Assembly (NCBI GenBank): GCA_977020255.1
Contig: CDROCS010002946.1
Coordinates: 186,001-250,000 of the forward strand
Reading direction: 5' to 3'
DNA length: 64,000 bases
DNA from: Obrimoposthia wandeli
Lineage: Eukaryota
This document shows positions 30,431 through 64,000 of this stretch, piece by piece. Every line of letters starts with the position of its first letter. Position 1 is the first letter of the stretch. The position numbers and the translations under genes were made by a program. Under the pieces are notes generated by a model. That model ran no database searches, was not told the origin of the DNA, and saw nothing but the letters and a program-made list of their open reading frames with translations.

Positions 30431-30835
30431 TGTTAGGATTAGAAATTTAATATTTTTTGAAAATAATTATTATTTATATAAGAATATAAAAACTTTGAAA
30501 GCAAGGTTAAAAAGAATAAATAATTAAATTAGAATTAAAATTAAATATAATAAAATCAAAAAAGTATTTTATGACCTTGAAGAAGTCAAGTGTTTAATGC
30601 GTTATATATAAGAAAGTTGTAATAAAATAAAGGGTACCAGTGTAGAAACCAAGAACGAAAATTAACAAAGAAAAGCTGAAGAGGAAAATCAATTAACAAT
30701 AATTTTGGAAAATTAATTGAAATCAATTCTGCTGCTGAGAATAAAGCAGCTGTCGGCCACTAAGTGCACAAGATTCGCAGACACCATCCATTACGACTGG
30801 GAACAAAGCAGCCGTCATCGTAATCAAGGTAAGAA
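30431..30835 (+). repeat. LTR-like direct repeat, copy 1
   Basis: Starts TGTTAGG. Shares collinear blocks (TTGAAAGCAAGGTT, TATATAAG, AGCAGCTG, CCGTC) with 34839-35245; clearly diverged. Confidence 0.5.
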
Positions 30836-33900: not shown

Positions 33901-34838
33901 TAATGACAATAAGCGCAGTTTGGAACACAAACCTATCGAATACAACCGTTAATTACCCCCACCATCGATGTTTGATAAATCAGTGCCAATATACAAATCT
34001 ACGTTATATGATCACATAGGAAACCAATCATATTTTTCTGAGTCAACAATATTCAACAGTTCATTCAAAGTAACCGAAGTAATGATCATGATGATGATAA
34101 TCACTCTGTTGTCACAAAACACTCAAGCAATGCCTGAATTCATATGCAGTATTAGAAGAACACATACGCATTTCAAAATAAACCTACCCAGCATAGAACC
34201 AAAACATGTAGTAATGATATTTGTCAAAACATTTGGTTCAGGAAGTGTATAAAATACCCCGATAAGAGTTTTTAGCAATAAGTTAACATACAAACGCCAA
34301 GAAATTAAAGCAATCAAACAACCACTGGAAAACCTCATAACCGCAGACACCAGATTAAGATAACTCAACACAATCATAGATCACATTCGTCCAGAATTAT
34401 CAATTCTCCCATATAATAAACGTATCAAATCTACTACTGATAAGATACAAATTTAAAAAGATTCAACTTGAGAACTAAACAAAAACCTATCTCAAAGGAT
34501 ATTGATTTTCATCTTGAACAAACATTATATTACACCGAAACAGTAATCATAACATGTCCTAAAGCGAAAGGAGACGTACATCCGAAACCTCACACTAAAG
34601 CAACAATGAAACAACCCACATTAGATTGTGAATATCTACGATTTAACATACCTTTAAATTTGACATATTGATAATATACGATCAAATAGGAATACTTTAC
34701 ACACTATCCCTAAATGTTAAGACGAACCATTGGTCTGGAGAAGATCAGCCCATGAATTGTACACACACGCATAACAAATAAATTGAGCCCAAACCACAGC
34801 AAGAACCGAAAAGATAATCAACTTTAACTCTATCCCAT

Positions 34839-35245
34839 TGTTAGGTTTAGGAATTAGGAAATTAAAATAATTAGTCGATTTTATACTAAAATAAAAATCC
34901 TTGAAAGCAAGGTTGAAAATTAAATTAAATATTAATTTTAAAATTCAAAACTAAAATTATTGAAATTAAGATAAATATTAGGAGGACCACGAAGGTCGTG
35001 TATAGTGTGTGATATATAAGGTTAGAATTAATTACTACAAAAGTGCAAAAGGGAACAATATAGAAATCTGCTAACGTCAGCAGAAGAAAAAAAGAAAAAC
35101 TACGAACGTCAGCAGAAAATCAAAAAGTAAGCACATTTACGTGCAATTGATTTAAATTGAGTCAACTTAGCAGCTGCCGCCAAGCCCCGGACCTCGGACC
35201 TCAAGTGTGCTGATTGACAGCAAACCGTCGACTATATAAGTCGCT
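34839..35245 (+). repeat. LTR-like direct repeat, copy 2
   Basis: Starts TGTTAGG; homologous to 30431-30835. No clear polypurine tract upstream. Confidence 0.5.
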
Positions 35246-40893: not shown

Positions 40894-43750
40894 ATTTGAA
40901 CAACTTATTCATTCCATCAATGAGTTGGACGTAGAAGGAGTGGCAAGATGTTACAGACCGGAATTGATAGAAAAAACGGATTATGTAATTTTTTACTGAC
41001 TATTTTTACGATAATTTACCAAGTTTGGGTTGTCTCCATTACATTGGGCTGTGAGGAAGAACTTCATCGAGGGACTACGCATTTTCTTAAGGGGAAATCC
41101 AAACTTGAACATCGTTAGCAACGTAAGTCATCTTTAATAATGCATCGATTATGACGTTTACATCCACTTAGACCGGTTACACTCCTCTCCACTTGGCTGT
41201 AGAATTTTCCAAATTTGAAAGTGTAAAGTTTCTCGTTGAGAATAGAGCGAATGTGAATGCGGTTGATCAGGTGACTTGGATTTATTACTTTAAAATTATT
41301 GTGTATAATTTTTATGATGGATGTTACCACATTTTTGTGCTTAATTTTGACAGGAAATGTTATGATCTAAATCGGGCATGATTTCAATTGTTGAAGTTTT
41401 GACCTCGTTTTTCCTATTTTAGTACGGGAAAACTGCATTGCTTATCGCATTGCAAAAGAACTGCTTCCGGATCGTTAAGTTCCTGTTGCAAAATGGAGCC
41501 AACATAGATAATGTAAGTTTAGTGCTGTCTGAACCAGCTAGTCAACTTATAAAAACAATCACCCATTCTCGCTCAGATTGGAAGAACTGCCATCCATGTC
41601 GCTGTGGCGTGGGGGAAACTGGAGTACCTTAAGTGCTTGATTGACCATGGAGCGCGGTTTGAAGGGGTTGGCAATAAGGTAATTCGCAAACTGCACTGTA
41701 TCATATTCTCCCTCGACCATTCTGCAGCATTTTCATGGGGTGATCAAGGGACTGCGCAGCGACAACTGCCTATATATGATAAAGCGAATATTTAGAAGTA
41801 TGGGAGATGTAACATCCTCAACTTTTACTGTAAATTTAAATGGATTTCTTCGGTGAAGTTGCTCGATCTAATACGACTAGTGCGCCGTTTTTGTTAAGAT
41901 GAACTGGCGATGTGAGGATCTGTTTTGCCGATTCTGCGTCAACTTATGTTGTCATCCATACAACACTGCGGCGTTTGGTAGAAGAGAGGTCACATCGCCA
42001 GTTTGTATCGCCGTGTGTTCGACCCCACCGCTGGGATTTAACCTAGGCTTTCTAAAACTTTTTCGATCGTAACTTAACTTGATAAACATTTGAAGAAATT
42101 TATTTTACATTCCCCAATTATAATAATAGCTTTTTAACAGTGCTTAAATAAAGTTAGTATAAAAGGATGGGATATACAAATATGGGATCAAAGATACTTA
42201 ACTGAGGCTCAAACGGTGAATAAAAAATCATTTTACTGATATTGTTTGATCACCGAATTCAGGATGGTTTAACAGCGCTCCATCTGGCTACAGCAATTGA
42301 CAACATCGAAATAATGCAAGTCTTGAAGGGGCATGGAGTAGATTTTGAAGCAAAAGACAATGTAAGTGGTTTCTAGCAGATATTTCTACACTTAAAATTT
42401 GACATTTATTTTTAATTATATTACTTTTTTCAGAAAGAAAGAACTGCTTTACATTTGGCCGCTGAAAACGGGACTATTGATTCGTTGGCATTTCTCATTG
42501 ACAGTGGCGTGGATGTAAACTCCCTTGACAATGTATATTAACGATCAGATTTGCTATATTTAACCAATTCAGTATGAGAAAACTCCTCTACATGTAGCAA
42601 CTCAGTATTCTAATTCCAGCATCGTAGAGCGTCTTTTAGAGAGTGGAGTGAATGTGAAATTAATAGACATAGTAAGATTGTGATTGTTTGGGCCAATAAT
42701 CGATGTAGTCAGGAAAAACTGCTCTCCATTATGCAGCAATGCAAAGTTTTCTACCGATCATTCAGTGCTTGCTTGATCACGGTGCTGATGTCCATGCTCC
42801 AGACCATGTACGGATTTAGCCTAAATAATTCCCATTTATTGACTCCCTTAGGGTGGACGGACTCCAATTCACTACGCCATCATGTATAACAGTGACGTGG
42901 TGATTTTAAAGTATTTTATAGAGAAAGGAGCTGATGTTTTTGCGGTCGATACGGTAAGTTTCTGTAATCAAGGTAATCCTTAGCTGATGCCCATTCAGTG
43001 TGGCCAGACCGGACTACATTTAGCATCATACAATGGCTTTGTGGAAAATATTGTGAATATCGAGTTTCTCCTGGGATTAGGAATCGATGTAAATGTTCTT
43101 AACAAGGTTGGTATCTCCGTTGGAATGTGTTTAACGGTCTGTTCAGGATTTGGAGACTCCACTGCACTATGCCGCAATTTGGGATACAGTGCCCTGTGCA
43201 GAGTATCTGCTAGAAGCCGGCGCAAACGTCAACGCCAAAGATAATGTAAGATTGCTCTTTTGGAGTGTTTTATTCAATTTTCAAGAAAGGAAACACACCG
43301 CTGTGCATTGCATGTGGCTACAACAAATCAAACGTGATTCCGTATCTGTTAGATTATGGAGCCGATATCAATATATCCACAAAAGTTGGTTTACTAGTTA
43401 AAGATGTTTTTTTATGAAAATCTAGACGAGAATGAGGGCCACAGAACTATCGACCATGAAAAATAAACGCTATGAATTTGAATTGAAGGTCAGAACGGAG
43501 AAGAATGTAAGTTTGAATCATTTTCTGGCCAACCTATGTAATGTTGATGGGAGAAAAAAAGTTAGACTTAATTATTTCCCATTTACAGGCCATTTGCGAA
43601 GTGTGTGAAGATCAACCAATCAACCGTGCTCTCGTACCCTGTACCCACACGATGTGTTTGCAATGCTCATGGAAAATGAAAATTTGTCCATTCTGTGGGG
43701 AACAAATCGAACATCGACAGAGCTTTTCTTTGCAAAATAGAATTAGTTGA
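40894..43750 (+). CDS. Ankyrin-repeat (~12) plus C-terminal C3HC4 RING-finger protein, putative E3 ligase; start exon unresolved
   Basis: Exons 40894-40984, 41024-41122, 41172-41270, 41423-41512, 41577-41678, 42263-42361, 42434-42532, 42573-42671, 42709-42807, 42852-42953, 42999-43106, 43147-43245, 43286-43384, 43426-43506, 43589-43750. All GT-AG, phase 0. Repeats such as GYTPLHLAVEF and ETPLHYAAIW. RING CEVCEDQPINRALVPCTHTMCLQCSWKMKICPFC. Confidence 0.9.
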
Positions 43751-45335: not shown

Positions 45336-45635
45336 CTAATCGTTTTGCAACGATAACCATAAAATACATAAATGTCCACAGTTTCTCGTCGCAGGATCCT
45401 GATATTGTATCTTGTTGTAAAATACTCTTCTTCGTACTTTTTGAATAGTTGAAACAAGTTTGTGTGGATAATACATTGCAGGTGGATCAAATACATGTAT
45501 TGTCCACTCTCTAACATAAATAGCTATCCAATGTTCTCCTGGTAAATTCGAAGTATGAGTATTGATAATGTAACCTCCAGATTGAAAAAATGGAATCATA
45601 TCAATAGGATAAACTCCATTGAATTTATCACCCAA
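45336..45635 (-). CDS. Adenain-type (peptidase C5) maturation protease of a Polinton
   Basis: FNGVYPID, IINTHTSNLPGEHWIA, FDP, YNKIQYQ, NCGHLC carry the His/Asp/Gln/Cys catalytic set. No ATG start seen. Confidence 0.82.
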   Translation of the reverse strand: MGDKFNGVYPIDMIPFFQSGGYIINTHTSNLPGEHWIAIYVREWTIHVFDPPAMYYPHKLVSTIQKVRRRVFYNKIQYQDPATRNCGHLCILWLSLQND

Positions 45636-45717
45636 GACCTTCTCTGCTGATTCTTGTACTTGTACTGAACTAAATAAAAATTAATAAATATAAATTTAAA
45701 AAATGTCTTACTTCATT

Positions 45718-45955: not shown

Positions 45956-46025
45956 TAGAGGAGAAACTAATGATATATTCAGGAAATTAACGATATTTAG
46001 GTGGTTAGAGAATGTTTTTGAAAAA

Positions 46026-48779
46026 CAAGTCAAATATCTGCTATATCAAACATGTTAATTATCCGTGAATGAATATAGCTCTATAAAACCTTTTAAAATA
46101 TATCTAATGAATTTATGTCAAACAAGTCCTCGTTAAATTTATGCCAAATAAACTAATAAATCAATGAAAATATTACATAAATTCATTAAAAACTCTAAAT
46201 ATTTATCAAAGCAATGTTAATTAATCAAATTTTATCAATAAATCATATTAAAAATATCATATAAAGTCATTCAAATACATCAAATCTCTGGAAAACTCAA
46301 GTAAAATTCCTACGTTGCAGTTATTTAAAAATATTCTACGTTGTAGTTGTTTAATCAATATGATTAACTTTTAGTTGTGAACATTTTTGTTGTAAACAGT
46401 TTCCTTATAATGTTTGATGAATAATTGTGTAGAAAGAATATATTGAAAAAGAATGAATCAATAAAAAAATACTGTTAATTCATACATTATCATAGAAACA
46501 TATTGATTTTGAAACATCAAATTTCCAAATACTGTAATTTCATACATTATCATAGATACATATTGAAACACCGAAATTATCAATATTATTATCAACATTC
46601 AGTCTCATCAACCACCATAATATCACTAATCATTTTATTATGATATTTCTAATATTCTATAGACGTTTGGAGTAATGTATGTTAGATGTTTTAAAATGTA
46701 TTATTGTTTTGGAAGTTGATTATTTTCTCTTATACGTTAATAACAGGTTATATATATACCCTCACAAAATCAGTAACAATAATACACATGATCATAACAC
46801 ATACATTTTCGATAGAAGCTTGAAACAATAATGTACGTTCAATGTTACTAACAAAAATGGCTTTATTATCTAAAAATATCACGAATAGGTTTTATACTTC
46901 ACATATTACTTTGGTAGAGTTAAATTTAAAAGAACATTAAAATAACAAATATTAAATTACTATCCTCTAAAAACTTTTAAGCAAATAAATAACAATTGCA
47001 TAAGTTATGAATAAAGTTTATACCAAAATACATTAAAATGTTATGTAGTGACCCACAATTAAGAATAATAGTTTTAAAATATTAATTAATTTTGCGGTAA
47101 ATTCACCTTTTTACGAATAACTGGTGTTGATAACCTCTAGAGATTTTATTTTCAAAGATAACAATGTATGCAAGGGTTAGCAATAATAAAAGCAAGATAG
47201 TAAGATACAAGTTTCATGTGCTGGATCAAAATACATCAAGGAATCTGAGTGAGAATCTTTCATCGAAAGTATGGAAACTGGTTCCTTAAATTTAAAAAAT
47301 CATCGACCAATTCTTATCACAGTTTCAAATCATTGATTAGATCGCGAGCCAAGGATATCATATATACTTCGATGAAAGCTTGAAATGATGAAGAAACATG
47401 TTTTAATTCTTACATACTATTTATAAAATCTATTTTTAGTAACATTTTGCAACAAGTTATGTGTTCTATTTTTAGTAACATTAAAACATCTATGGTTAAT
47501 TTGAGGTCCAGTAATGATCTGTAACGTATATTCTTAGACCACATTGCAACTTTTGGCAGCAATTCATGTGTTCTATTTTTAGTAACATTACGACATCTAT
47601 TGGTTAATTTAAGTCTCAGTTAAGAGATATTTCATTAAACATGCAAGCAATTACTGATTTATATTAATGTGCCCGTATGGATATGCATTTCAAGCCTATT
47701 ACAATTTCGGTATCGATGAAAATATTTGATTACTTAATTTCTAATATTATTAAAGCAGAGAATAAAATACTTACAAAATCAATTGTATCAGCTGGAAGAA
47801 CCCATTATCAAAGGAAATTATGCCATTTTCAGAAATATCAAAACTAGATGTTTACCCAAATGGAATATCAAGATTACACCCAGTGGATTGGTGACTCCTG
47901 TTTGGAAGGAATTAATAAATGTTATCTTTATTTTCTTCTTTATTAATAAGAAGCCTGACAGTTATGAATAAATTGATAGAAATATTTAATCAGATGATAA
48001 AACGATATATGATAGTAACGAATGGCTTCTAGAAGAGATGTAGATTAAATACTTACAAAGCACTGATTTGAAAATAAGTATAATTTTTTCTATATATCGA
48101 TTTGTAATGTTAGATTTGCAATAGTATGTGCTTTGTATTTGAGGGTTTCATTATAAAATATATATTATTCATATATACAGATTTCACACGAGATATAAAC
48201 AAAATCAATAACATATATTCATGGATACAACCAATCCTCGACCAATCAGGTGAGGTTATATAAACTATTCAGACATTATTTCACAGTGTTGACAAAATCG
48301 AGATACCAGAGGATCAATTCAAACACATTAAAGAAACACTCTAAGGAATCAACATTTAGTTTGTTATATATGATGCCATCAAATTGAAAAAAAATCAAGA
48401 TCCTTATCATAGGATGGGTTATTTATTTACTCAAGAATCCTATCACTTCTCCAATCAATGTAAAGAAAGTTCGATTATAGATATTTTAAATATTTAATCT
48501 ATGTGTTTTTTATAGAAAATTTATGTATTTGAATGACTTGATATGATATTTTGTATATTTTAATATGATACAATTTGATTAATTAACATTGATTTGATAA
48601 AGATTTAGAGTGTTTGAATGAATTTATATAATATTTTCATTGATTTATTTCACAGATTTAACAGATTTAACGAGGACTGGATTGACATTAATTCGGTAGA
48701 TATATTTTAAAAGATTTTAAATAACTATAAAACTATTCACGGATAATTAACATGTTTGATATAGCAGATATTTGACTTG
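46026..48779. mobile_element. Element bounded by ~260-bp imperfect inverted repeats (foldback/MITE-like)
   Basis: 46026-~46290 is the reverse complement of ~48510-48779 (CAAGTCAAATATCTGCTATATCAAACATGTTAATTATCCGTGAAT...). AT-rich interior with no recognised ORF. Confidence 0.65.
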
Positions 48780-49799
48780 GTTTTATCAGAGTTAGTAATT
48801 CTTACTTATCGGGGATATAATGTATTTGTGTTTATCAGATATTTATTGTATTTTACTTGGGGTTTAGCAGATTTACATATATTTATTGATTAACTTAATG
48901 TAATTGGTATTTGAGTTATTTGATGTATGGGGTTTATAAATATTTAATGTATTTGAATTTGATTAATTATTATGGATTTATTAGAGAATATTTGATGTGG
49001 TTTGTGATTCATTTACATGAATGAAGCTATGTATTTCAATATAGTTACAAGTTCTCATTGAGCAGGGTTTACAGGGTTTAATAAATATTTTCATAGCATT
49101 TTCATTGATTTTACTGATTAATTTCATAAGTGATTTTAATTTGTATTTGTATATGAGATTACCAGTTATGTAATTATATACATGCGAATAATTAGTACTA
49201 TAATTTATTCTCATACACACATATACTGATATATCAAATTATGTCCAAATATAGACATGTACACTAACTCTTCTTGTTATTTTCAACAAACGAAATTATC
49301 CTCTTCTTAACTATTTTCCTCTTCTTAAACCTCTTAACCAGCACGAGATTATCCTCTAAACGCCAAAATATCGTAAATTTCCTGAACATATCATTAATTT
49401 CTATAATTATTATATATTTCTTGAATATATCATTAGTTTCTAGAATTATCATCGATTTACTGATCATTTATCTTCTAGAAGCATTCTATTACCTCTAGCA
49501 AACAAAACGTTAATGAGTTAATTTAGAAGTCTTCTTTTCTAAGGGAAGTTTGTAATTCACTCGGAATACTACTTCAATGAATTATTTCTGCTAGTGAGGT
49601 TGAGACAAATATTGTCAATCATAGTTAGTAAATACCTCCAACTTGAATCTTGGGATCAGTCTTTTAGCTAACGCGCTTGAAAACCTCTGTAAAATAATAT
49701 CTTACCTTATAGAAGTGTTCAAAATTCTAAAGCTTATTTGGTCTCCTACACTTGTCTAGAATAAATAAATAATGAGCATATATTCTTCCACAAATAAAA

Positions 49800-50030
49800 T
49801 AAATTGTAAGATATTGTTTCTTCCACAAATAATATAAATTGTAAGATATTGTTTCTAAATAAATTGTAAGATATTGTTTCTTCCACAAATAATATAAATT
49901 GTAAGATATTGTTTCTAAATAAATTGTAAGATATTGTTTCTAAATAAATTGTAAGATATTGTTTCTAAATAAATTGTAAGATATTGTTTCTTTCACAAAT
50001 AATATAAATTGTACAATATTTTAATTTTAA
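49800..50030. repeat. Short tandem array of AAATTGTAAGATATTGTTTCT with two linker types
   Basis: About 7 copies of the 21-bp core. Confidence 0.88.
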
Positions 50031-51108
50031 TGGCTGATTTTCTAAATCAATCCCAGTTATAGTTCTGCATTCAAAAAGGAGATAAGAGGGAGAAATTCGC
50101 CGCAGAGAGAAATAGCAGCGCTGGCCGTCAAAACTGCGAGAGGATAGTTGTTGCCGAGAGACACGAAACACCGACCGCATCCGAGAATCCCGCGCTGCAT
50201 CCACCCACACGCCGAGCCGCAGCAGTGGCTGCAACAGACTGACAGCAGAGGGAGATAGCTGCGGTTGTGGGGAGATGCATCCCGACACAGCCACGCATAG
50301 AGGGAGAGAGAGAGAGAAATGGCAGCATCTCCAGGCAATTGGAACTGGGCAGAGAGGAATAAACCAAGAGTCCAGTTGATCTGTAATGCCATCTAAATAT
50401 GGCTAAATTTGTCTCGATCACAGATCGAACTGAATCAAATTAGTCCAGTCGATCTGCGACCGAATCCCAAACAGTGACATTCTTCTGTCACTTTTATCTC
50501 TGGCTTCGCGGAAATAACTACCGCGAAGTCAGAGATAACCCGCCGTTCCCCTGATGAGCCCGGCAGGGCGAAACCGGTGATAAACCGGTCGGGAACTGAC
50601 CAAAATAAAATGATTCTAAAAATGTGCACCGAATGCACTTTTTAATTAACTTTTAATTAATTAAACTTAACAATCCTATGGGGGTAAACCAAGACAGACC
50701 TCTGACGTTCGCAAAAATAAATGAAAAATGAATATCCCGTTTAGCATGTCTGTCAAAATGTGATTTTTTTTTAAAAAACAAAATTATCAAGGCTGTTAAT
50801 CCATAATCCAAAAAATTTGAAGATGAAAAGTAAAACGTCAATTTTTATGTTACACATTCGCGAGTAGTAAAAATATCTATTGCATGATGCATAAAATAAT
50901 AAGAGTATAAAATTTGTTCTTACATTAAAAGTTGATGTCAGGATCAAAATTTCAGTAATTTGCAGAAAAATTTGTATACGAAGTCATTTTAAAAATGATA
51001 AATAGTTTAAAAGTTGATAGGTTTTTGATAACAAATAGGTCAATTGTTCGTGCAGTAATAATAATACCTTTTAACTATACGTTGTCTAGAATAAAACAGT
51101 CGTTTGAA

Positions 51109-52077
51109 TCAGAGTCGGAGTTTGGATATCTCATTTGGGGTACCCAACAAATCATTCAAACGGAACTCCTCCACCAGTCTTTCTTTACGTTTGTCAAAAA
51201 CTCGCTTAATGTTTCTTGCGTCTTCTAAACAAGTGTGATATTTCTTTTGAGATTCTTCTCCAAAATATTTCTCTACCATTGTTTTTAGTGCTATTTTTGG
51301 ATGATTATGGCCTAGTTCTGATCTAATTTCAGTGGATGCACCTAGATCTACTATTCTTGCAAAATGACATCTTTCGAGTCGTAAAACTTTTAAATCATTT
51401 TCTACTCCTGCTCCTACTAGAATGTTTCCGACTAGTATTGTTTGAGCTCTTGCTATAATGTCTTCCGCATCGACTCTTCCTGTCAATGATTTTTCCGTAA
51501 AATGAGTCACTCGATGTACATAATTTTGAATTCTTTCCCTCGGTGTGACTATTTCATGTAACACGATCTGGTTCTTTTCATCTATTATCGTGATACTTCC
51601 TAAATCCTGTTTTTTGTTAACTGCGGTGGCCATTTCACAATCCATAAAATATTTAACGGGTGCCTGTTTTGTAGTATTATGTTCTATGAACATGATTTTA
51701 TTGGTCTTTTTTATAAGCTCTATAAAAAATGTATTGCGTCTAGGACTAAATTTTAATAAATATTCGTTTCTTAATTCGTTTTTACTTATGGTGTATGAAT
51801 GATTTTGGAGGAACATGTAACTTAAATCTTTCTCTTGCTTACTCATAAAGTGGGCTCGTCCTTCTGCTACATGTATCTCTATCTCCTCTATGTCTATCAA
51901 TTCACCTACCAATTCTATTAAACTTATCCTTACATTTTTTGTATGATGCATGGTGATTATGACACTTTTTCTACTAGTTTTAGTGATTTTCAATTTATTT
52001 GGGATGAACGTTTGATTTTCAAAAATGTGTTTGCTCTCATCATTATTTTTAAGCTTCTCTTTCCTATACTGTCTCAT
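51109..52077 (-). CDS. Intronless DEDDh 3'-5' exonuclease (REX4/ISG20-like) with a possible N-terminal RRM-like domain
   Basis: ATG start, 322 aa. Exo I YFMDCEM (D146, E148), Exo II ILVGAGVENDLKVL (D228), Exo III HTCLEDA (H281, D286). Also IVTPRERIQNY, IALKTM. Confidence 0.88.
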   Translation of the reverse strand: MRQYRKEKLKNNDESKHIFENQTFIPNKLKITKTSRKSVIITMHHTKNVRISLIELVGELIDIEEIEIHVAEGRAHFMSKQEKDLSYMFLQNHSYTISKNELRNEYLLKFSPRRNTFFIELIKKTNKIMFIEHNTTKQAPVKYFMDCEMATAVNKKQDLGSITIIDEKNQIVLHEIVTPRERIQNYVHRVTHFTEKSLTGRVDAEDIIARAQTILVGNILVGAGVENDLKVLRLERCHFARIVDLGASTEIRSELGHNHPKIALKTMVEKYFGEESQKKYHTCLEDARNIKRVFDKRKERLVEEFRLNDLLGTPNEISKLRL

Positions 52078-52553
52078 TCTTCTATAAAAGAACTTTTGCT
52101 AAGATATTCATTTTTGGAGTACACTTTGTTTGTATTTCATCGTTGCTTAAATCTATAACTGGTGGTGAAGGACCGTCTAAACAACTTTCTCCCACTACAC
52201 GGATCCATTTCCGTTTGTTTGTTGAGTATTCCATCTGTGATATATATAACAGAATAAGAATACAGCAAGGTCATTAGTCACAAAGCTCATGCAAAAATAA
52301 AAATAAATTATTAGTTCATTAGTTAGTTGGTTAATCAAGAGTCTATATCTAATATTGTACTAGTTCCTTGCTGCTCCATAGACATAAATAAAGTATAGAT
52401 ATATATATAGATATAATTATGTTTATTATTATTATTTTTCTCTCTTTATCCTTTTTTAATTCAGTAAACATTATTTTCCTAAATCATGCTCATAATCTCT
52501 ATTTCATTCTCAGTCTTTATTAAATGATTTTAATTCTACTCACTAGGAATTTA

Positions 52554-52862
52554 CTAATTGTCGCATCCAGAATCATCGCTTTCTATATGTTGGAATCCCA
52601 TCAAGTGATTCACCATTGATCGTAAGGATATTAGTGAATTTAACGCTTCTCTGAGTCTTTGTACTAGTATTTCTTGGCTTGATTGGCTATGTTCTAATCT
52701 TTCAATTGCAACGTCAAAAGCATTATTCATTCGTTCACATTCCATTTCCTTGTCTTTTAAATGCGATCTCAGATTTATATTCTCTATCAACAATTTATTT
52801 TCCCATTTCTTCTGTCTCTTATTTCTTCTTCTATTATTTTGTACCAATTTTGAATTTCTCAT
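52554..52862 (-). CDS. Small basic/coiled-coil ORF (102 aa), unknown function
   Basis: ATG start, Arg/Lys cluster RRRNKRQKK, heptad-like Leu/Ile pattern; co-oriented with the neighbouring retroelement ORFs. Confidence 0.5.
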   Translation of the reverse strand: MRNSKLVQNNRRRNKRQKKWENKLLIENINLRSHLKDKEMECERMNNAFDVAIERLEHSQSSQEILVQRLREALNSLISLRSMVNHLMGFQHIESDDSGCDN

Positions 52863-53016
52863 TTTCTAAAATGATAATAAATTTTTAAGTTTATTTTTTA
52901 CTATCTTCTATTTAAACTAAACACATACGCACTTTCCTTTATCTACATTATAATTACTTTATTTTATGATTAGTTTTTATTTTAGTATTTCATTTCATGT
53001 ATTTCTTATGACAATT

Positions 53017-54265
53017 TTATAAAGATTTTTCTATTTTCTTTTTATTATTCTCAATTATTGTATTTATTGACACGTTAGATGAGTTTGAAGAGCTAGGAAT
53101 GATGGGTGTCATAAATGGGCCAGGTGGTTCACAATACTTAGTCCGATAATGATTCTTGAAAATTGTGTTATTTTTTACTTTAATGATCTTCCATGTTATT
53201 TTTATGATTAATGTGCAGGTTTCGATTATTATGATTGTTATAAAAAATTCCTTGTTATTTATATTTTTGAGTATTTTTGTTTATTAAAGTGTATTTTTAG
53301 ACTTTTATTAAAATGATTTATAGAGTATTGTTTCTGTTGTTTTTAATTTTTGTTAATTGTTTTATTTTCTGTGATATTATTTTGATTTGTTCTTTCATAA
53401 GTCTTTGTTGTGAATGTTGTAGTATGTGGTATTTGTTTTAAGGTTGTTTCTTTGATATATTTCCTAATTGTAATTACTGACCATTGACCACAAAAAATCG
53501 TAAGTTGGTATAATTTGGATATTTTATTTCCTAAAATCCTTAAGTTTGTTAGGTTTTTACAAGTCTCAAATTGTTGTCCCCATTGTCTATACATTATGGG
53601 TTTGTTAGTAATTACACATTCTCTATTATCCATAATTATTTTTTCTGGATATCTTATATTTTTTATAGTTATATTTGTTCTGATTTGTGTTTTTTCTAAT
53701 TGTTTTTCTGCGTCTTTCCAAAAATGATCATTATATCCTCTATATCTAATTCTAATGAGGGTTTTATCTAAATTATCTATTTTAAGTTGAAATTCCCAAT
53801 TTATCATGATTTGATGTTTTGTTATATATTTTGCTGTTGTTTTTAATATTGAGGCTAAGTATAAGTGAGTTTCTATAATTCTTTCATAGAGTGTTATATT
53901 TTTTAAATTCAACTTAACTCTTATTTTGTATTGTGTTTCTGTTCTTAAAAATGGTATTATATAATTTTTTGATTCGATTTTGTAAATATTTATTATTTGA
54001 TTTTTTTCAGATTGTATTATTTGAATTCTTCCTAATTTTTTGTAAAGAGTGATATTTTTAACTTTATTGATGTGATTTCAGGTATTATTGTAATTAGTCC
54101 AAAATTTTTTATGAGATGTGTTGATGAGTCGTATCTTTGTATTTCTTCTTTTACTATTAATTGATTTTCATTCAGGTTTATAGCATTTACTTTTATTATG
54201 TTACTTTTTACTGTAAAATATATTATTAATAACATCATTATTTTACATATTTCTTTTATTGACAT
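53017..54265 (-). pseudogene. env-like type-I membrane protein of the Gypsy element (frameshifted)
   Basis: Signal-like MSIKEICKIMMLLIIYFTV at 54265, middle piece in ORF 53343-53912, TM-like FFITIIIIETCTLIIKITW plus a short tail ending at 53017. Confidence 0.55.
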
Positions 54266-54361
54266 TTTTATTCTATTTATAGTTTGGTGACTCAATTTAG
54301 TCTTGTTTTGTTTTTGTGAGTTTTTTATAGTTAACATTTGTAGAACAGTATTATTGTTAGT

Positions 54362-57300
54362 TGATCTTAAGTTATATTTGTGACTTTTTACTTTTGTATT
54401 TTCCTCTGGTATTTCTCGACATCTGTTTATATGTGTTCTTATTTCTTTTGATTTTGGTTCATTGTCGAGTTTAGCTGTTATGTTAGTTCCATTGGTACTA
54501 ATAACTGTATATGGTCCTTTGTATGGTTTTGATAATTTGTGTGATAATCCTACATTGATTTGTGGATTGTGAATCATTACTTTACTTCCGATTTTTATAT
54601 TTGATGGTTTAGTTCTTCTATCATAATATTCTTTGTAATTTTCTTGTATGTTTTTTACAAATAATTTAGCTTTTTCAAATGCTAGTTTTATTCTTTCTCT
54701 AATTTCTATTTTGTATTCAGGTATGTCTAGGTACTGTGTAGTAGGTTGTAGTAATGTTAGATCAATAGGCATTTGAGGATCTCTGAGGAAAATAAGGTAA
54801 AAAGGTGTTTCTCCTGTAGATGCATGTACTGATGTTCTATATGCAAAAAGGCATGGGGGTATGTGTAAATCCCAATCTGTTTGGTTGTTGTTTGTGTATG
54901 ATGCCATCATATCTTCGAGGGTTCTATTAAATCTTTCTACTAATCCGTCGGTTTGAGGGTGATATGGTGTTGTATTGATCTTTTTATGTGAAAGATTTCA
55001 GCTATTGATGCTAATACATTATTTATAAATTCAGGACCTTTGTCGGTTAATAATTTTCGGGGTGCACCGAAAGTAAAAATAATTTTTTCGACTAAAACCT
55101 TCGCGATGGTTTCAGCCTTATGATCATGTGTTGGGAAAGCCTCTGGCCATCTTGTAAAATAATCCGAAAATACTATTATATATCGATTTCCTCGGGTGTT
55201 TCAGGTAATGGCCCCATTACATCCATGGCAACAGTTTCCATGGGGGCCGATGGATACGGTATTGGTTTTAAAGGTATCTTTGTGGTACGTAAAGTGTTTT
55301 TTCTTTTAAGACATATTTCACAAGTATTACACCAATTTTTACATCTTCTTTCATATCAATCAAATAATATTTTAAATTTAATCTCGAATGTGTCTTTTTT
55401 GTTGAAAGATGTCCTCCTAAAGCTCCGTTATGATATTGAAGGAGTAATTGGCATTGTATTTCTTTAGGTATAACTAGTGAGTACAGATTTTTATCGTTTA
55501 AATAATGTAAAATATTGTTACTGAATTTATAACGAAATTCATGAATTTTTAAATGTTTTCTTAATTTTTCATCCGTTGGAACTTGATTGATGGTGATGTA
55601 CTTAATTATTTGTTGTATTTCCGTATCTTTGCTTTGAAGATAGGTGATTACTTTATCATCATATCGAGCCTTGATTATTGTAAAAATGTTTAATTCGGTG
55701 TCATTGGAATTTATTACATTTACTTCTCTTTATTCTAGATAGGCAATCTGCATTGGCATTTGATTTACCTTTTCTATATTTAATTTCGATATCATATTTT
55801 GGAGAATTAACGCCCATCTCATTAATCTAGATGTTGTATCTTTATGATTTAGTAGCCACTGTAATGGTCTTTGATCAGTATAAACGTGAACCTTTTCTGA
55901 CCTAATAAGTAATGTTTAAAATGTTCCATTGCGAAACAAATATGCCAGGCATTCTCTTTCTATTGTTGAATAATTTATTTCGTGTTTTTTAAGACCTCTG
56001 CTTGCGTAAGCTATCACATGATCTTTTTCGTTATTATCTTGTTGTCCTAGTACTGCTCCTAACGCATATCCACTTGCGTCAGTCATTACTAGAAACGAGT
56101 TGTTGAAATTAGGATATCTCAATATAGGTTTTTCAATCAATTTTGTTTTAAATACTGCGTATGACTCTTGTTGTTTCTGTTTCCATTCAAATTTTTCATC
56201 CTTTTAATAAGTTTGTTTAATGGTGTTGCTATTTGTGCAAAGTTTCTGATAAATCTACGATAATATCCTGCAAGTCCCAAAAATTCTTGTATATTTTTTA
56301 CTGTTTTTGGGATTGGAAAATTCTTTATTTTTTTTCTATATTACTTTCATCTGGTTGAATTCCTTTTGCAGATACTGCGTGACCTAGATAATTCACTTTG
56401 TCTTTCATCCATTCACACTTTTTTGGTTTTAATTTTAAACCTGCTATTTTTAATCTAAGAAATACATTTTCTAAATCTTTTAAATGTTCTTCAAAATTTT
56501 TTGAAAAATTAGAATATCGTCGATATAGACCATGACATGATCGGCGTCCATTAAAATGTGGCTCATGCATCTCTGAAATGTTGCTGGAGCACCTGTTAAT
56601 CCAAAAGGTAAAACGTTAAATTCGTATAATCCTTCTCCTGTTGAGAATGCTGTTTTTCTTTATCTGATTCATCTATTTCTATCTGCCAATATCCACTTTG
56701 TAAATCTAAGGTTGTAAATATTTTTGCATTTTTAGTTTATCTAAGATTTCATCGATTCTGGAAGCGGATATGTGTCTTTATGTGGGATCTCGTTTAATTT
56801 TCTGTAATCTACGCAAAATCTTAGTGAACCATCTTTCTTTTTATCAAAACAACTGAGAAGTCCATGCTGAAAACTTTTCTTATGATTTTATTCTCTAACA
56901 TTCCTTTTACCTGTCTTTGAGCTTCTTCTCTGTAAGCGTATGGGATACGGTAAGGTCGTTGTTTGATTGCTGTATTAATAGTTAACGGAAGGTTATGTTT
57001 AATTAAATCTGTTCGTCCAAGGTCATATTCATTTTTGCAAAAAATTACGTCATATTTCTTGTTGTAAGTTATTACTTTAATATAATTTACAACAAAACTT
57101 CAAGTAATTTACTTGTAAACTACAAAATTTATAAGTTCTTGGATATATTCAGTTTAAAACATAGTAATGTAAAACTCTAATATAATCTAAACATAAAAAT
57201 ACAAGTAATTTACTTATTAATCATAATTTTAATGATTTGATCAATAAATTGACTTGTAAACATAATATAATTTGCATATTTTCAATTTAACACGTTGTAA

Positions 57301-59210
57301 GTTAATACTGTAATATTTCATTACATAAAAAGTAATTCATAGTTTACTATCGTTTACAATAAATTGACTTGTAAACATAATATATTTATGCATATATTCA
57401 CTTAAAAATGTTGTAAGTTATTACTTTAATAAAATTTTCAACAAAAACTTCAAGTAGTTTACTTATTAAACATAAGTTTAATGTTTTGTACAATAAATTG
57501 ACTTGTAAACATAATTTATTTTGGTATATTTTCAATTTAATATGTTGTGTTATTACTTTAATATAATTTACAACAAAAACTTCAAGTAATTTACTTGTAA
57601 ACTACAATATTTATTTGTTGTTGTATATATTCAGTTTAATATATTGTAAGTTAATACTGTAATATTTCATTACATAAAAAGTAATTGATAGTTTACTATC
57701 GTTTACAATAAATTTATGCATATATTCACTTTAATATGTTGTGTTATTACTTTATTATCATCTTAACTAAAAAAACTTCAAGTAGTTTACTTATTAAACA
57801 TAAGTTTAATGTTTTGTACAATAAATTGACTTGTAAACATAATTTATTTTGGTATATTTTCAATTTAATATGTTGTAAGTTATTACTTTAATATAATTTA
57901 CAACAAAAACTTCAAGTAATTTACTTGTAAACTACAATATTTATTTGTTGTTGTATATATTCAGTTTAAAATGTTGTAAGTTATTACTTTAATATAATTT
58001 ACAACCAAATCTTCAAGTAATTTACTTATTAATCATAATATTAATGATTTGATCAATAAATTGACTTGTAAACATAATATAATTTGCATATTTTCAATTT
58101 AATATATTCTAAGTTAATACTGTAATATTTCATTACATAAAAAGTAATTCATAGTTTACTGTCGTTTACAATAAATTGACTTGTAAACATAATATAATTT
58201 GCATATTTTCAATTTAATATATTGTGTTATTACTATAATATTACATTACATAAAAAAGTAATTGATAGTTTACTATCGTTTACAATAAATTTATGCATAT
58301 ATTCACTTTAATATGTTGTAAGTTATTACTTTATTATAATTTTCAACAAAAACTTCAAGTAATTTACTTATTAATCATAATATTAATGATTTGATCAATA
58401 AATTGACTTGTAAACATAATATAATTTGCATATTTTCAATTTAACACGTTGTAAGTTAATACTGTAATATTTCATTACATAAAAAGTAATTGATAGTTTA
58501 CTATCGTTTACAATAAATTGATTTGTAAACATAATATATTAATGCATATATTCACTTAAAAATGTTGTAAGTTATTACTTTAATAAAATTTTCAACAAAA
58601 ACTTCAAGTAGTTTACTTATTAAACATAAGTTTAATGTTTTGTACAATAAATTGACTTGTAAACATAATTTATTTTGGTATATTTTCAATTTAATATGTT
58701 GTAAGTTATTACTTTAATATAATTTATAACAAAAACTTCAAGTAATTTACTTGTAAACTACAATATTTATTTGTTGTTGGAGACATTCAGTTTAAAATGT
58801 TGTACGTTAATACTTTAATATAATTTACAACCAAATCTTCAAGTAATTTACTTATTAATCATAATTTTAATGATTTGATCAATAAATTGACTTGTAAACA
58901 TAATATAATTTGCATATTTTCAATTTAATATATTGTAAGTTAATACTGTTATTTTCCATAAATTCTAGAAGATTTTGTTAAAATTATATGTATTTTTAAG
59001 AGTTGACTTTTTACTATTTTTTGGTGTTTTTCGTTTATTTTTATTTTTCGATTTTGTATCTTGTGTTTGAGTGGTTTGATTTATTTTTGTACTTATTTGT
59101 GTTCTTTTTTCTAATGTTAGACAACCATTTCTAAATATTTCTCCGAATTGATTGGAGAGTTGGTAATTTATTTGTGTTTTGTTCATTGTTTTGGTATTGC
59201 TGATGTATTT
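54362..59210 (-). mobile_element. Ty3/Gypsy pol (RT-RNase H-integrase), frameshifted and split by a satellite at 57061-58950
   Basis: [62 protein letters not shown]. RNase H TDASGYALGAVL..IAYASR. Integrase H..GGH..C..C, MDVMGP, LTDKGPEF, YHPQTDGLVERFNRTL, KPYKGPY. Confidence 0.92.
57061..58950. repeat. AT-rich satellite A, related ~100-135-bp monomers in a variable ~480-bp higher-order unit
   Basis: Recurring TTGTAAGTTATTACTTTAATA and TAAATTGACTTGTAAACATAAT; four monomer types recur in roughly fixed order. Confidence 0.93.
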
Positions 59211-59238
59211 CCTTTTGTAAAGCGATTAGAAGGATTTA

Positions 59239-59418
59239 CCACTTGACCCCCCCCAAAGGGTGTCACTCCATGCGGATGTCACACCATGTGCAGTAGCCTG
59301 CCACACCATAAGGGTATATGCTGCCTCACCTCTGGTGAGGCAACATATACCCTTATGGTGTGGCAAGACACCTTTATGGTGTGACACCCTTTAGAGGGGA
59401 GGGGGAGGGGCCAAGTGG
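59239..59418. other. Large imperfect DNA palindrome
   Basis: 32-bp arms 59299-59330 and 59334-59365 (1 mismatch, 3-nt loop), with further outer arms AAAGGGTGTCAC.CCAT and CCACTTG.CCCC. Confidence 0.88.
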
Positions 59419-59469
59419 CTTGAGACTCCATCCTTCTTTGATATACTACCATGGTCGTCCATAGTTTAA

Positions 59470-59860
59470 AGGGTCAAGTGGCTTAGTCTCCACCCTTCTT
59501 TTGAGATATGTCTACCACTATGAAAGGGTCAAGTGGCTTAGTCTCCACCCTTCTTTTGAGATATACCACTATGAAAGGTCAAGTGGCTTAGTCTCCACCC
59601 TTCTTCTTTTTCAGATATACCACTCATGAAAGGGTCAATTGGCTTAGTCTCCACCCTTCTTTTAGTGATCTAGTTCCACCCTTCTTCTTTTAGTGATCTA
59701 GTTCCACCTTTTCTTTTTTGTGGTCTAGTTCCACCCTTCTTTTTAGTGATCTAGTCTCCACCCTTCTTTTGTGATCTAGTCTCCACCCCTTCTTTTGGCT
59801 AACTACTAATTCAAAGGATCAAGTGGCTTAGTCTCCACTCTCTTTTTGTGGATCTAGTCC
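59470..59860. repeat. Tandem repeats (~50-bp units decaying to ~25-bp sub-units)
   Basis: GGTCAAGTGGCTTAGTCTCCACCCTTCTTTT... then GTGATCTAGT(C)TCCACCCTTCTTTT units. Confidence 0.88.
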
Positions 59861-60486
59861 ATAATGAAAATTTATGATAAAAAAGTTCACTTTAACAATT
59901 AAGAAATGTGTGGTTTTTAACATACACATACAATATTTTATGTGAAATTCTGTGATAAAGTTCACTCTTATCAATTAAGAAATGCGGTGGTTTTTTAACA
60001 CACATACACTATTTTATTATTTTATGAAATTTAAACTAAAGTTCACTCTTATAAGCGGGTTAATGAATGTATTACGTAATCACACACATACTATTTTATG
60101 TGAAATTTAGATCAAAGTTTTTCCTAGGTTTTCACATTTATAGAATTATGATAAAATTTCTTTAAATAACTTCAATTATATATTAAAATAAAAATAAAAT
60201 AAGAAAGAAGTCAGAGAATAATACAAAATTAAACACATTTATTATGTAATTTCATAATATCATCTTCAAACTTAAGTGAATAACATTTACAAAGTAAGAA
60301 AGTCCATTCTTTATACATTCTTTTTGTTTAAATCGACTAAGTTAAATGGAATTAATAGAAAATTAGTAAAAATATTAATTTATTTGAATATTTGAATGAG
60401 AGTTTGAATAAATGAGAGGTAGAATGAATGTAAATGAATAAAATTATGCATGCAAGTATGAATGTCATTTACAAGTAAGAGTCTTA

Positions 60487-61418
60487 GCAAGTGAATGTAA
60501 TTTTAAAATAAGAGTGTCGATAGTTTGATTGAATGCAAGTGTAATTTAGACTATAAGTAAATTAAAATATAGTTTTTGTTGAATAAATTATAGTTAGATT
60601 GAATGCAAGTATGACGAGCAAGTGATTGATAGTATGAATTTCAATACAAGTAAGTGGGTTTAGCAAGTGAATGTAATTTAAAAATAAGAGTGTCGATAGT
60701 TTGATTGAATGAGAGTGTAATTTAGACTATAAGTAAATTAAAATAGAGTTTTTTGTTGAATAAATTATAGTTAGATTGAATGCAAGTATGACGAGCAAGT
60801 GATTGATAGTATGAATTTCAATACAAGTAAGTGGGTTTAGCAAGTGAATGTAATTTTTAAAATAAGAGTGTCGATAGTTTGATTGCAATGTAAAAGTGTA
60901 CTAGACTATAAGTAAATTAAAATAGAGTTTTTGTTGAATAAATTATAGTTAGATTGAATGCAAGTATGACGAGCAAGTGATTGATAGTATGAATTTCAAT
61001 ACAAGTAAGTGGGTTTAGCAAGTGAATGTAATTTTTAAAATAAGAGTGTCGATAGTTTGATTGAATGCAAGTGTAATTTAGACTATAAGTAAATTAAAAT
61101 AGAGATTTTGTTGAATAAATTATAGTTAGATTGAATGCAAGTATGACGAGCAAGTGATTGATAGTATGAATTTCAATACAAGTAAGTGGGTTTAGCAAGT
61201 GAATGTAATTTTAAAAAATAAGAGTGTCGATAGTTTGATTGAATGCAAGTGTAATTTAGACTATAAGTAAATTAAAATAGAGATTTTGTTGAATAAATTA
61301 TAGTTAGATTGAATGCAAGTATGACGAGCAAGTGATTGATAGTGGCGAATTTCAATACAAGTAAGTGGGTTTAGCAAGTGAATGTAATTTTAAAAATAAG
61401 AGTGTCGATAGTTTGATT
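60487..61418. repeat. Satellite B, ~178-bp monomer, ~5 copies
   Basis: AGAGTGTCGATAG at 60511, 60687, 60865, 61043, 61221 and 61399. Confidence 0.95.
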
Positions 61419-61720
61419 TTTAAATTACTTGACATTTTTTTTGCCATTGTCCGTTTAATATAATTATGAATATTCAATTTATTTCTTCAAAAATTCATTT
61501 TATATGTTAAATAATATTCTTTATCACATTATTGTGGTTTTTATCATGATTTTAACCTTAAACTATAAAAAGATATTTTAATTATAAAGTTAGTTGCTGT
61601 ACCTCTGCCCACTGCGTATATAACATAAATTTCAAATATAAAGTACTATTAAGTTTATTATTTCAAATAGTAAATGTTTTTTTTTTCGAGTTATTTAATT
61701 TTGTTTACTAGACATTCGAA

Positions 61721-64000
61721 AATTTACTTATAAACTACAATATTTATTTGTTGTTGTATATATTTAGTTTAAAATGTTGTAAGTTATTACTTTAATATAA
61801 TTTTCAACAAAAACTTCAAGTAGTTTACTTATTAAACATAAGTTTAATGTTTTGTACAATAAATTGACTTGTAAACATAAATTATTTTGATATATTTTCA
61901 ATTTAATATGTTGTAAGTTATTACTTTAATATAATTTACAACAAAAACTTCAAGTAATTTACTTGTAAACTACAATATTTATTTGTTATATCATATATTC
62001 AGTTTAAAATGTTGAAGTTAATACTTTAATATAATTTTCAAACAAAAACTTCAAGTAGTTTACTTATTAATCATATATTAATGATTTGATCAATAAATTG
62101 ACTTGTAAACATAATATAATTTGTATATTTTCAATTTAACATCGTTTTAAGTTAATACTGTAATATTTCATTACATAAAAAAGTAATTGAGGTTTACTAT
62201 TTGTTTACAATAAATTTATGCATATATATTCATTTTATTAGGCGTTGTGTTATTACTTTATTATAATTTTCAACAAAAACTTGCTAGTTTACTTTATTAA
62301 ATATAAGTTTAATGTTTTGTATAATAAATTGACTTGTAAACATAATTTATTTTGCATATTTTCAATTTAATATGTTGTAAGTTATTACTTTAATATAATT
62401 TACAAATAAACCCAAGTAATTTACTTGTAAACTACAATATTTATTTGTTGTTGTATATATTCAGTTTAAAATGTTGTAAGTTAATACTTTAATATAATTT
62501 ACAACCAAATCTTCAAGTAATTTACTTATTAATCATAATTTTAATGATTTGATCAATAAATTGACTTGTAAACATAATATAATTTGCATATTTTCAATTT
62601 AACACGTTGTAAGTTAATACTGTAATATTTCATTACATAAAAAAGTAATTGATAGTTTACTATCGTTTACAATAAATTTATGCATATATTCACTTTAATA
62701 TGTTGTAAGTTATTACTTTATTATAATTTTCAACAAAAACTTCAAGTAGTTTACTTATTAAACATAGTGTTTAATGGGTTTTGGTATAACAAATTGACTT
62801 GTAAACATAATATAATTTGCATATTTTCAATTTAATATATTGTAAGTTATTACTATAATATTACATTACATAAAAAGTAATTCATAGTTTACTATCGTTT
62901 ACAATAAATTGACTTGTAAACATAATATATTAATGCATATATTCACTTAAAAATGTTGTAAGTTATTACTTTAATAAAATTTTCAACAAAAACTTCAAGT
63001 AGTTTACTTATTAAACATAAGTTTAATGTTTTGTACAATAAATTGACTTGTAAACATAATTTATTTTGGTATATTTTCAATTTAATATGTTGTAAGTTAT
63101 TACTTTAATATAATTCTCATAAACAAAACTTTATAATTTACTTGTAAACTACAATATTTATTTGTTGTTGTATATATTCAGTTTAAATGTTGTAAGTTAA
63201 TACTTTAATATAATTTACAACCAAATCTTCAAGTAATTTACTTATTAATCATAATTTTAATGATTTGATCAATAAATTGACTTGTAAACATAATATAATT
63301 TGCATATTTTCAATTTAACACGTTGTAAGTTAATACTGTAATATTTCATTACATAAAAAAGTAATTGATAGTTTACTATCGTTTACAATAAATTGACTTG
63401 TAAACATAATATATTAATGCATATATTCACTTAAAAATGTTGTAAGTTATTACTTTAATAAAATTTTCAACAAAAACTTCAAGTAGTTTACTTATTAAAC
63501 ATAAGTTTAATGTTTTGTACAATAAATTGACTTAAACATATAATTTATTTTGCATATTTTCAATTTAATATGTTTTTTATTATTACTTTAATATAATATA
63601 TAACAAAAATCCTGGCAATTTACTTGTAAACTACAATATTTATTTGTTGTTGTATATATTCAGTTTAAAATGTTGTAAGTTAATACTTTAATATAATTTA
63701 TAACCAAATCTTCTTCAAGTAATTTACTTTATTAATCATAATTTTTAATGATTTGATCAATAAATTGACTTGTAAACATAATATAATTTGGTATATTTTC
63801 TAATTTAACACGTTGTAAAGTTAATACTGTAATATTTCATTACATAAAAGTAATTGAGAAGCTTATTATCGTTTACAATAAATTGACTTGTAAACATAAT
63901 ATATTAATGCATATATTCACTTAAAAATGTTGTAAGTTATTACTTTAATAAAATGTCTAACAAAATCTCAAGTAGCTTCATTTATTAAACATAAGTTTAA
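61721..64000. repeat. AT-rich satellite A, second array (runs off the window)
   Basis: Same monomers and orientation as 57061-58950. Confidence 0.95.

Follow-up and report, generated by a model that had tools for sequence, protein, structure and literature searches.

A 5'-truncated Ty3/Gypsy element in Obrimoposthia wandeli probably carries an ISG20-type DEDDh exonuclease as its own accessory gene

We analysed a 64-kb window of the genome of Obrimoposthia wandeli (contig CDROCS010002946.1); the window is this whole stretch of DNA, and coordinates given for it are window-based. At one locus, a broken pol gene of the Ty3/Gypsy type is followed on the same strand by a membrane module, an intact 102-amino-acid (aa) open reading frame (ORF) and an intact 322-aa ORF that reads as a DEDDh exonuclease. 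Comparison with related sequences makes it probable that the region is a truncated element of an env-bearing Gypsy lineage and that the nuclease is the element's own accessory gene. From the 5' to the 3' side of the element, the features are as follows.

57020..59068, no strand: AT-rich satellite array, GC 0.18 (repeat families and Tandem Repeats Finder)
54158..57099, minus strand: pol remnant of Ty3/Gypsy type with reverse transcriptase (RT), RNase H (RH) and integrase (IN) (Pfam and frameshift-aware alignment)
53020..54157, bounds approximate, minus strand: putative post-integrase membrane module, continuing from the integrase C-terminus, with at least two frame changes
52554..52862, minus strand: intact 102-aa ORF with a basic N-terminus, a coiled-coil-like middle and an acidic C-terminus (ORF list)
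51109..52077, minus strand: intact 322-aa ORF, predicted two-domain nuclease (phmmer against PDB, HMMER relatives, AlphaFold2)
51709..52035, minus strand: predicted cupin-like N-terminal beta-barrel of the 322-aa protein, residues ~15-123 (model and Foldseek)
51163..51654, minus strand: predicted DEDDh exonuclease domain of the same protein, residues ~142-305 (Foldseek, family profile and catalytic residues)
50050..51108, minus strand: region 3' of the nuclease stop codon, the expected site of the element's 3' end or long terminal repeat (LTR) (repeat comparison)

All element features sit on the minus strand, and over 51-57 kb this strand is rich in A (plus-strand AT skew of -0.18 to -0.35). 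An earlier note on this DNA, made from the letters and an ORF list, had described same-strand ORFs and remnants sharing an A-rich bias, in the order pol, membrane stretch, 102-aa ORF and 322-aa ORF, and this arrangement was recovered from the ORF list, Pfam and the AT skew. The Pfam matches on the pol pieces run RVT_1, RT_RNaseH_2/RT_RNaseH, Integrase_H2C2 and rve, which is the RT-RNase H-integrase order of Ty3/Gypsy elements, the protease having been lost through truncation. The 322-aa ORF is the longest in the ORF list of the window; the longest within 1-51000 has 184 aa, and no other ORF overlapping 46000-62000 comes near it in length. Aligned to three intact relatives, pol shows 14 frameshifts and 0-2 in-frame stops in ~2.9 kb, and at least two frame changes follow in the tail after integrase, while the 102-aa and 322-aa ORFs run without a break.

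The 5' side of the element ends at ~57.06-57.1 kb in the AT-rich satellite, and because this array truncates it, gag, env, protease and the 5' LTR are absent from the copy. Neither gag, a primer-binding site nor a polypurine tract was recognised in the window. The earlier note had not resolved any LTRs, and a repeat search of the window agrees, finding no direct repeat that flanks the region, only the satellite and unrelated repeats. Downstream of the nuclease stop codon, ~450 nt of AT-rich sequence give way to a GC-rich, non-coding-looking block, and this stretch has no second copy anywhere in the window. Rfam and tRNA scans of the window gave no matches. For the 102-aa ORF, Pfam returned weak matches only, to coiled-coil families, and no homologue was detected among the small ORFs of the relatives described below.

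We also looked for the missing gag-env half elsewhere in the window and rejected this candidate, the search yielding only a short, weak env-like match at ~32.0-32.8 kb on the opposite strand. This match falls in an A-rich, coding-like block at 30000-35000 on the plus strand, most marked at 32012-32818, where PF24664 scores E 8e-5, below the cut-off, and where identity to the N-terminus of the relatives' Env is 32-37%. The block is not contiguous with the studied copy and may be a remnant of another env-bearing element.

Judged by alignment and by its model, the 322-aa ORF would encode a cupin-like barrel joined to a DEDDh exonuclease domain of the ISG20/ISG20L2/REXO4/SDN1 kind. In a phmmer search against PDB, its best match was Arabidopsis SDN1 (8.9e-6), and human ISG20 was also found (1.5e-4). 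The five DEDDh residues that the earlier note had picked out, D146 and E148 (ExoI, D-x-E), D228 (ExoII) and H281/D286 (ExoIII, H-x4-D), do coincide in alignment with the catalytic positions of ISG20 and SDN1. The catalytic set is kept in 19 of 19 full-length relatives, with D146, E148, H281 and D286 invariant and the ExoII position occupied by D in 10 and by E in 9. Pairwise identity among eight compared two-domain proteins is only 22-47%, and the invariance of catalytic residues across so divergent a family argues that catalysis is under selection.

A HMMER scan of 1.84 billion representatives returned 685 relatives at E<=1e-3, and the top full-length relatives, P0001 (5e-36) and P0002 (1e-33), are 31-34% identical to the window protein. 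A profile of the family, run against PDB, matched ISG20L2 (5e-25), ISG20 (3e-20) and SDN1 (5e-17). The AlphaFold2 model built from the family alignment (mean pLDDT 82) shows a two-domain fold, in which the N-terminal domain is all-beta and the C-terminal domain is predicted to be an ISG20-type exonuclease. In Foldseek, this modelled C-terminal domain has an RNase H-like alpha/beta fold and superposes on ISG20 (1wlj) with a target-normalised TM of 0.85 and an rmsd of 2.3 A over 166 columns, as well as on ISG20L2 (TM 0.82-0.83), PAN2 and SDN1. The modelled N-terminal domain matched EutQ, the CENP-C cupin domain and tm1459 at E ~4e-5 to 9e-5, and a screen of 152 sequences (the 150 top-scoring matches, the window protein and the L007 protein) detected it in 20.

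Other searches returned little. None of the viral proteins in BFVD has the two-domain layout; PF01612 (RNase D-like) has no match in the window protein and a sub-threshold one in L002 alone (3.4e-4). A word-indexed protein search with the 322-aa protein found nothing, and its family-profile version was swamped, yielding only three members; an exact-sequence look-up of the ORF likewise found nothing. A locus search with a narrow alignment retrieved four metagenome loci, of which one was both new and informative, and none among viral contigs.

Loci outside the window support, by sequence comparison, a link between the nuclease and a Gypsy pol lineage. A nuclease homologue lies downstream of pol, on the same strand, in L002, L003/L006, L004, L005, L007, L008 and L010, so that with the window included the linkage holds in eight of the eight distinct loci with enough upstream sequence. 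L003-L008 and L010 are contigs of ENA and JGI metagenomes. Five contigs were left out of the count: L001, L011, L012 and L013, which show no pol but are just 2.1-2.7 kb long with at most ~470 nt upstream of the nuclease gene, and the contig of P0003. Between pol and the nuclease there are 33-361 nt, except where a coiled-coil ORF intervenes and the gap is 961 nt. In L002, which comes from a run assembly, the integrase end is fused to a membrane module and P0002 follows 33 nt later; in L003/L006, L004, L005, L007, L008 and L010, a polyprotein of 2694-4057 aa is followed by the nuclease homologue at 100-361 or 961 nt. The match spans the whole protein and not just the common nuclease fold, since the N-terminal domain is common across the family.

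Two of these loci place the nuclease gene inside an element with paired LTRs. In L007, repeats at 7149-7482 and 22409-22743 (83% identical, 15.3 kb apart), and in L008, repeats at 2-396 and 15964-16355 (90% identical, 16 kb apart), enclose gag, the polyprotein and the nuclease gene. A TGG-led, primer-binding-like motif lies 3' of each 5' repeat, and the 3' LTR begins 0.8-1.2 kb after the nuclease gene. The earlier note had proposed counting how often nuclease and pol co-occur within paired LTRs; co-occurrence was complete at the loci that could be read, and the enclosure by paired LTRs was seen in L007 and L008 only, which lends support to the linkage that the window copy, lacking LTRs, cannot supply itself.

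The window copy belongs with these elements by its pol. Frameshift-aware alignment gives 52-57% identity to the L005, L007 and L008 polyproteins over ~900-970 residues that begin shortly before RT and reach the integrase end (outer bounds ~54.1-57.1 kb). The earlier suggestion of an env-bearing Gypsy lineage with an accessory nuclease is thereby supported, since pol of the window copy resembles that of relatives that carry the nuclease downstream. Furthermore, nuclease identity tracks pol identity between loci: by either measure, L003-L005 are the closest and L007 and L008 the most distant. This pattern fits long joint descent of nuclease and pol rather than repeated capture.

The relatives also correct the position of env. 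In the L005 polyprotein, Pfam finds the fusion glycoprotein PF24664 (5e-80) upstream of the protease; the same family lies between gag and protease in L003-L008, and L010 has an N-terminal stretch alignable with the env-bearing portion of the L005 polyprotein. The module after integrase is bounded by two hydrophobic segments in all four of the intact tails examined. In the window, the post-integrase region keeps a hydrophobic stretch at each end and has no Pfam match, and its alignment to the relatives' tails is weak, slightly above shuffled controls. The stretch that the earlier note had called env-like is thus, as its sequence reads, a membrane module joined to the integrase C-terminus and not the Env of the lineage. 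Because the gag-env part is absent from the window copy, its membership in the GAG-ENV-POL lineage rests on the pol identity given above.

Several features of the relatives' contigs are recorded here in their own right. Directly 3' of the nuclease gene, L003 (11421-11684), L005 (11430-11699) and L006 (11481-11684) have a small coiled-coil ORF of 67-89 aa with an acidic Ser/Pro-rich end; it is 38% identical between L003 and L005, and L003 and L006, which come from different archives, are identical there. The small coiled-coil ORFs that flank the nuclease gene in these three loci have no detectable similarity to the 102-aa ORF of the window. The 4057-aa polyprotein of L004 (P0164) carries the ankyrin-repeat families PF12796, PF13637, PF13857 and PF13606. 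Immediately upstream of the element in L007, fragmented bacterial-type genes on one strand (2334-5753; MacB, ABC ATPase, YknX-like and TetR) could reflect a chimeric contig, decayed horizontally acquired genes or long-read frameshift errors. Just past the 3' LTR of L008, at 16872-18689, lies a protein-primed DNA polymerase B gene (PF03175).

A number of observations weigh against reading the nuclease as a gene of this element lineage. The window copy has no LTR, gag, env or protease, so its own linkage rests on position, strand and comparison. The contigs of the closest nuclease relatives, P0001 and P0002, measure 2-3 kb, and the end of pol is visible upstream in L002 alone. Identity between paired LTRs is only 83% in L007 and 90% in L008, and these contigs are for that reason either old insertions or composite assemblies. 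Taken alone, the 322-aa protein has no PF00929 (RNase_T) match at E<=0.1; the relatives above the 24-bit cut-off of that family are P0001 (40.0), L005 (28.4), L004 (27.4) and L002 (24.1). Finally, the phylogeny of the nuclease domain that the earlier note had proposed did not deliver: the neighbour-joining tree is saturated and without resolution, the two-domain proteins do not form one clade in it, and it consequently decides neither monophyly nor a cellular donor.

A rival to the linkage would be that a host REXO4-like gene or retrogene merely adjoins a Gypsy remnant. In favour of this, the ORF has no break and no intron, the window shows no LTR around it, and its relatives include cellular REXO4 genes (P0006, 1.7e-17). 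However, the cellular relative identified by name, REXO4 of Mesocestoides corti, is spliced, sits among host genes and lacks the N-terminal domain, and the closer matches with readable surroundings (P0002, P0004, P0005 and P0007, but not P0001 or P0003) are all downstream of pol. Since strand, order and coding bias also agree with the element, we regard a chance neighbour as highly improbable.

The contrast between a broken pol and an intact nuclease gene bears on two further explanations. One is domestication, in which the element died while selection in the host preserved the nuclease gene, possibly together with the 102-aa ORF, so that only these stayed open. The 969 nt of the nuclease gene contain no frameshift, against 14 in the ~2.9 kb of pol; at the pol rate, 4.7 would be expected in the nuclease (Poisson P(0) 0.009), and the density of base runs is equal in both. 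All catalytic residues are retained, and the fold is modelled with confidence. On the other hand, this is a single locus for which protein search and exact look-up found no orthologue or exact copy, and the gene retains its place in the gene order of the element. Moreover, the pol breaks resemble indel errors rather than age, and with that the premise of a long-dead element falls away. Domestication therefore seems unlikely to us, if less so than a chance neighbour.

The other explanation, compatible with an accessory gene of the element, is that the pol frameshifts are mostly indel errors of a long-read assembly in unpolished repeats and that the contrast with the nuclease is technical. Frameshifts far outnumber stops (14 against 0-2), 12 of the 14 are consistent with one missing base, and base runs are close at hand: 10 of the 14 lie near runs of at least four identical bases (background 0.36) and 7 near runs of at least five (background 0.16). 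Pfam still gives good scores to the RT, RNase H and integrase motifs, and nowhere in the 64 kb, although 34% of it is A, does a run of nine or more A occur. Since the breaks in pol are nearly all frameshifts close to base runs, with stops few or none, they may be assembly errors. Yet the nuclease and the 102-aa ORF, with the same base-run density, should then also have been hit, and slippage in base runs is a natural mutation as well. We give this explanation a substantial chance, somewhat short of even. The earlier description of pol and env as frameshifted beside an intact nuclease is accordingly upheld in its counts, with the proviso that the contrast may be partly an assembly artefact. As a side observation, A-runs of 7 or 8 are rarer in the window than the trend of shorter runs predicts; the missing long A-runs hint at base-run compression in the assembly.

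Under the reading we favour, the region would derive from a large Ty3/Gypsy (Metaviridae) endogenous retrovirus-like element whose copy here is truncated on the 5' side, and the 322-aa ORF would be an accessory gene of the lineage and not a host gene. Complete members run LTR, gag, env (a class III fusion glycoprotein), PR-RT-RH-IN (PR, protease) with a membrane tail, nuclease and LTR, and in some of them small coiled-coil ORFs flank the nuclease gene on one side or on both. The enzyme would be a metal-dependent 3'-to-5' exonuclease acting on single-stranded RNA ends. It would be made from a separate downstream frame, presumably from a subgenomic or spliced message, and would act in trans.

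As to function, the nearest solved relatives are RNA 3'-end nucleases, and the role we tentatively favour, at somewhat less than an even chance, is counter-defence, in which the enzyme would trim or destroy host small RNAs or the RNA that triggers silencing or sensing. A role in the element's own replication ranks second and is possible, with a smaller chance: the nuclease might process the 3' ends of primer, genomic RNA or complementary DNA (cDNA), or control their quality by removing misincorporated 3' nucleotides. For LTR elements the relatives are exceptionally long, with 15.3-16 kb between LTR starts and polyproteins of 2694-4057 aa, and every member examined retains the gene; removal of misincorporated nucleotides would parallel nidovirus ExoN, here in a retroelement genome of unusual length (15-16 kb). 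ISG20-type enzymes also degrade single-stranded DNA. Against a replication role, the nearest solved relatives process or degrade RNA, and the nuclease is a separate ORF and not a domain of pol, unlike known proofreading modules. Returning to counter-defence, its most specific form, an ISG20/SDN1-like suppressor of RNA-based host defence long kept by an unusually large env-bearing Gypsy lineage, is speculative, and we rate it a little below the replication role.

The surroundings of the element are repeat-rich. The satellite at its 5' side (57020-59068) has sub-units of ~100-134 bp and a higher-order period of 342 bp; the same satellite resumes at 61675-64000, where the higher-order period is ~482-484 bp. 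The element fragment adjoins the first block, and other repeats separate the two, among them tandem arrays at 59468-59796 and 60455-61418, one a G+C-richer 26/53-55-bp repeat and the other a 178-bp repeat (5.4 copies, 95% matches). A second, unrelated retroelement fragment at 233-1984 on the plus strand, interrupted as well, has a gag-like ORF and protease/RT pieces that are 26-43% identical to the studied pol. Inverted repeats at 46021-46295 and 48508-48784 (84% identical, ~280 bp, 2.2 kb apart) may mark the ends of a DNA transposon, and a 114-aa open stretch at 45339-45680 on the minus strand is a tentative candidate for a Maverick/Polinton-like cysteine protease, for which Pfam gave no match. 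Host exons encode ankyrin repeats and a C3HC4 RING finger at 41172-43747 on the plus strand, and ankyrin repeats, a SAM domain and poly-Q and acidic stretches at 3253-6801 and 28938-29279 on the minus strand, spread over tens of kb. These exons (ankyrin, SAM, RING) are short and widely spaced and thus fit an intron-rich host, as the earlier note had supposed; by its sequence, the host has an AT-rich animal genome with long introns.

Mobile elements with exonucleases of this superfamily have precedents. Bdelloid rotifer LTR retrotransposons (Juno, Vesta) and Athena/Terminon elements carry a DEDDy exonuclease, ORF3 (Rodriguez, Kenefick and Arkhipova 2017, PMC5408684), which is counted among the well-known accessory domains of LTR retrotransposons (PMC6338049). 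As at our locus, the enzyme is a 3'-5' exonuclease of the DEDD superfamily, has an ORF of its own that follows pol in Gypsy-like LTR elements, and is accompanied by coiled-coil and transmembrane ORFs. However, ORF3 is RNase D/WRN-like and DEDDy, whereas the window nuclease has the H-x4-D motif of the DEDDh type, matches ISG20, ISG20L2 and SDN1, has a cupin-like N-terminal domain and belongs to a different element lineage. KolobokD transposons also encode a DEDDh accessory nuclease (PMC9587614), but these are DNA transposons with a TREX/ERI1-like enzyme, so that element class and nuclease subgroup are both unrelated.

In their gene order, L003-L008 and, by alignment, L010, with a fusion glycoprotein between gag and protease, resemble the GAG-ENV-POL errantiviruses. 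A survey of these elements (eLife 2026, PMC13524379; compare Sacco et al. 2022) places GAG-ENV-POL 'errantiviruses' with an Env of the gB/class III type in Nematoda, Bryozoa and Platyhelminthes, and the words 'exonuclease' and 'nuclease' occur 0 times in its text. Our literature search found no paper on Gypsy or errantivirus-like elements that describes an ISG20/REXO4-type DEDDh nuclease. The earlier claim that the combination was undescribed therefore needs narrowing: it is not wholly new, because the DEDDy ORF3 (PMC5408684) and the KolobokD DEDDh nuclease (PMC9587614) are published. What we found described nowhere is an ISG20/REXO4-type DEDDh nuclease as a regular, long-kept gene of a Gypsy-type element family.

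Cellular enzymes and RNA viruses provide the remaining comparisons. ISG20, ISG20L2 and REXO4 give the best fold and profile matches and share the five catalytic residues of the window nuclease; they are ~19-20% identical to it in structural alignments and lack the cupin-like N-terminal domain, and the nuclease gene of the element is intronless whereas the one flatworm REXO4 gene checked is spliced. Arabidopsis SDN1, the best single-sequence match in PDB, has the same DEDDh core and could, by analogy, serve as a model for an attack on small RNAs, although its flanking domains are unlike those of the window nuclease. Accessory genes distinguish complex retroviruses from simple retrotransposons, and to our knowledge few are known in invertebrate elements. 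The present case concerns one conserved accessory enzyme, of the antiviral ISG20 clade, in a 15-16 kb env-bearing Gypsy lineage met in several unrelated data sets, and intronless REXO4- or ISG20-like genes beside retroelement remains in animal genomes may likewise be genes of the element and not of the host. The C-terminal domain of the arenavirus nucleoprotein and nidovirus nsp14 are also virus-borne DEDDh nucleases; in Foldseek, the lymphocytic choriomeningitis virus (LCMV) nucleoprotein C-terminal domain ranks 23rd (E 2.6e-5), far weaker than ISG20, and these viral ExoN are domains of larger RNA-virus proteins, whereas the window nuclease is a free-standing ORF of a reverse-transcribing element. 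The enzyme is a concrete candidate for how such elements cope with RNA-based silencing or handle an RNA genome of great length, a question that the arenavirus and nidovirus nucleases also pose.

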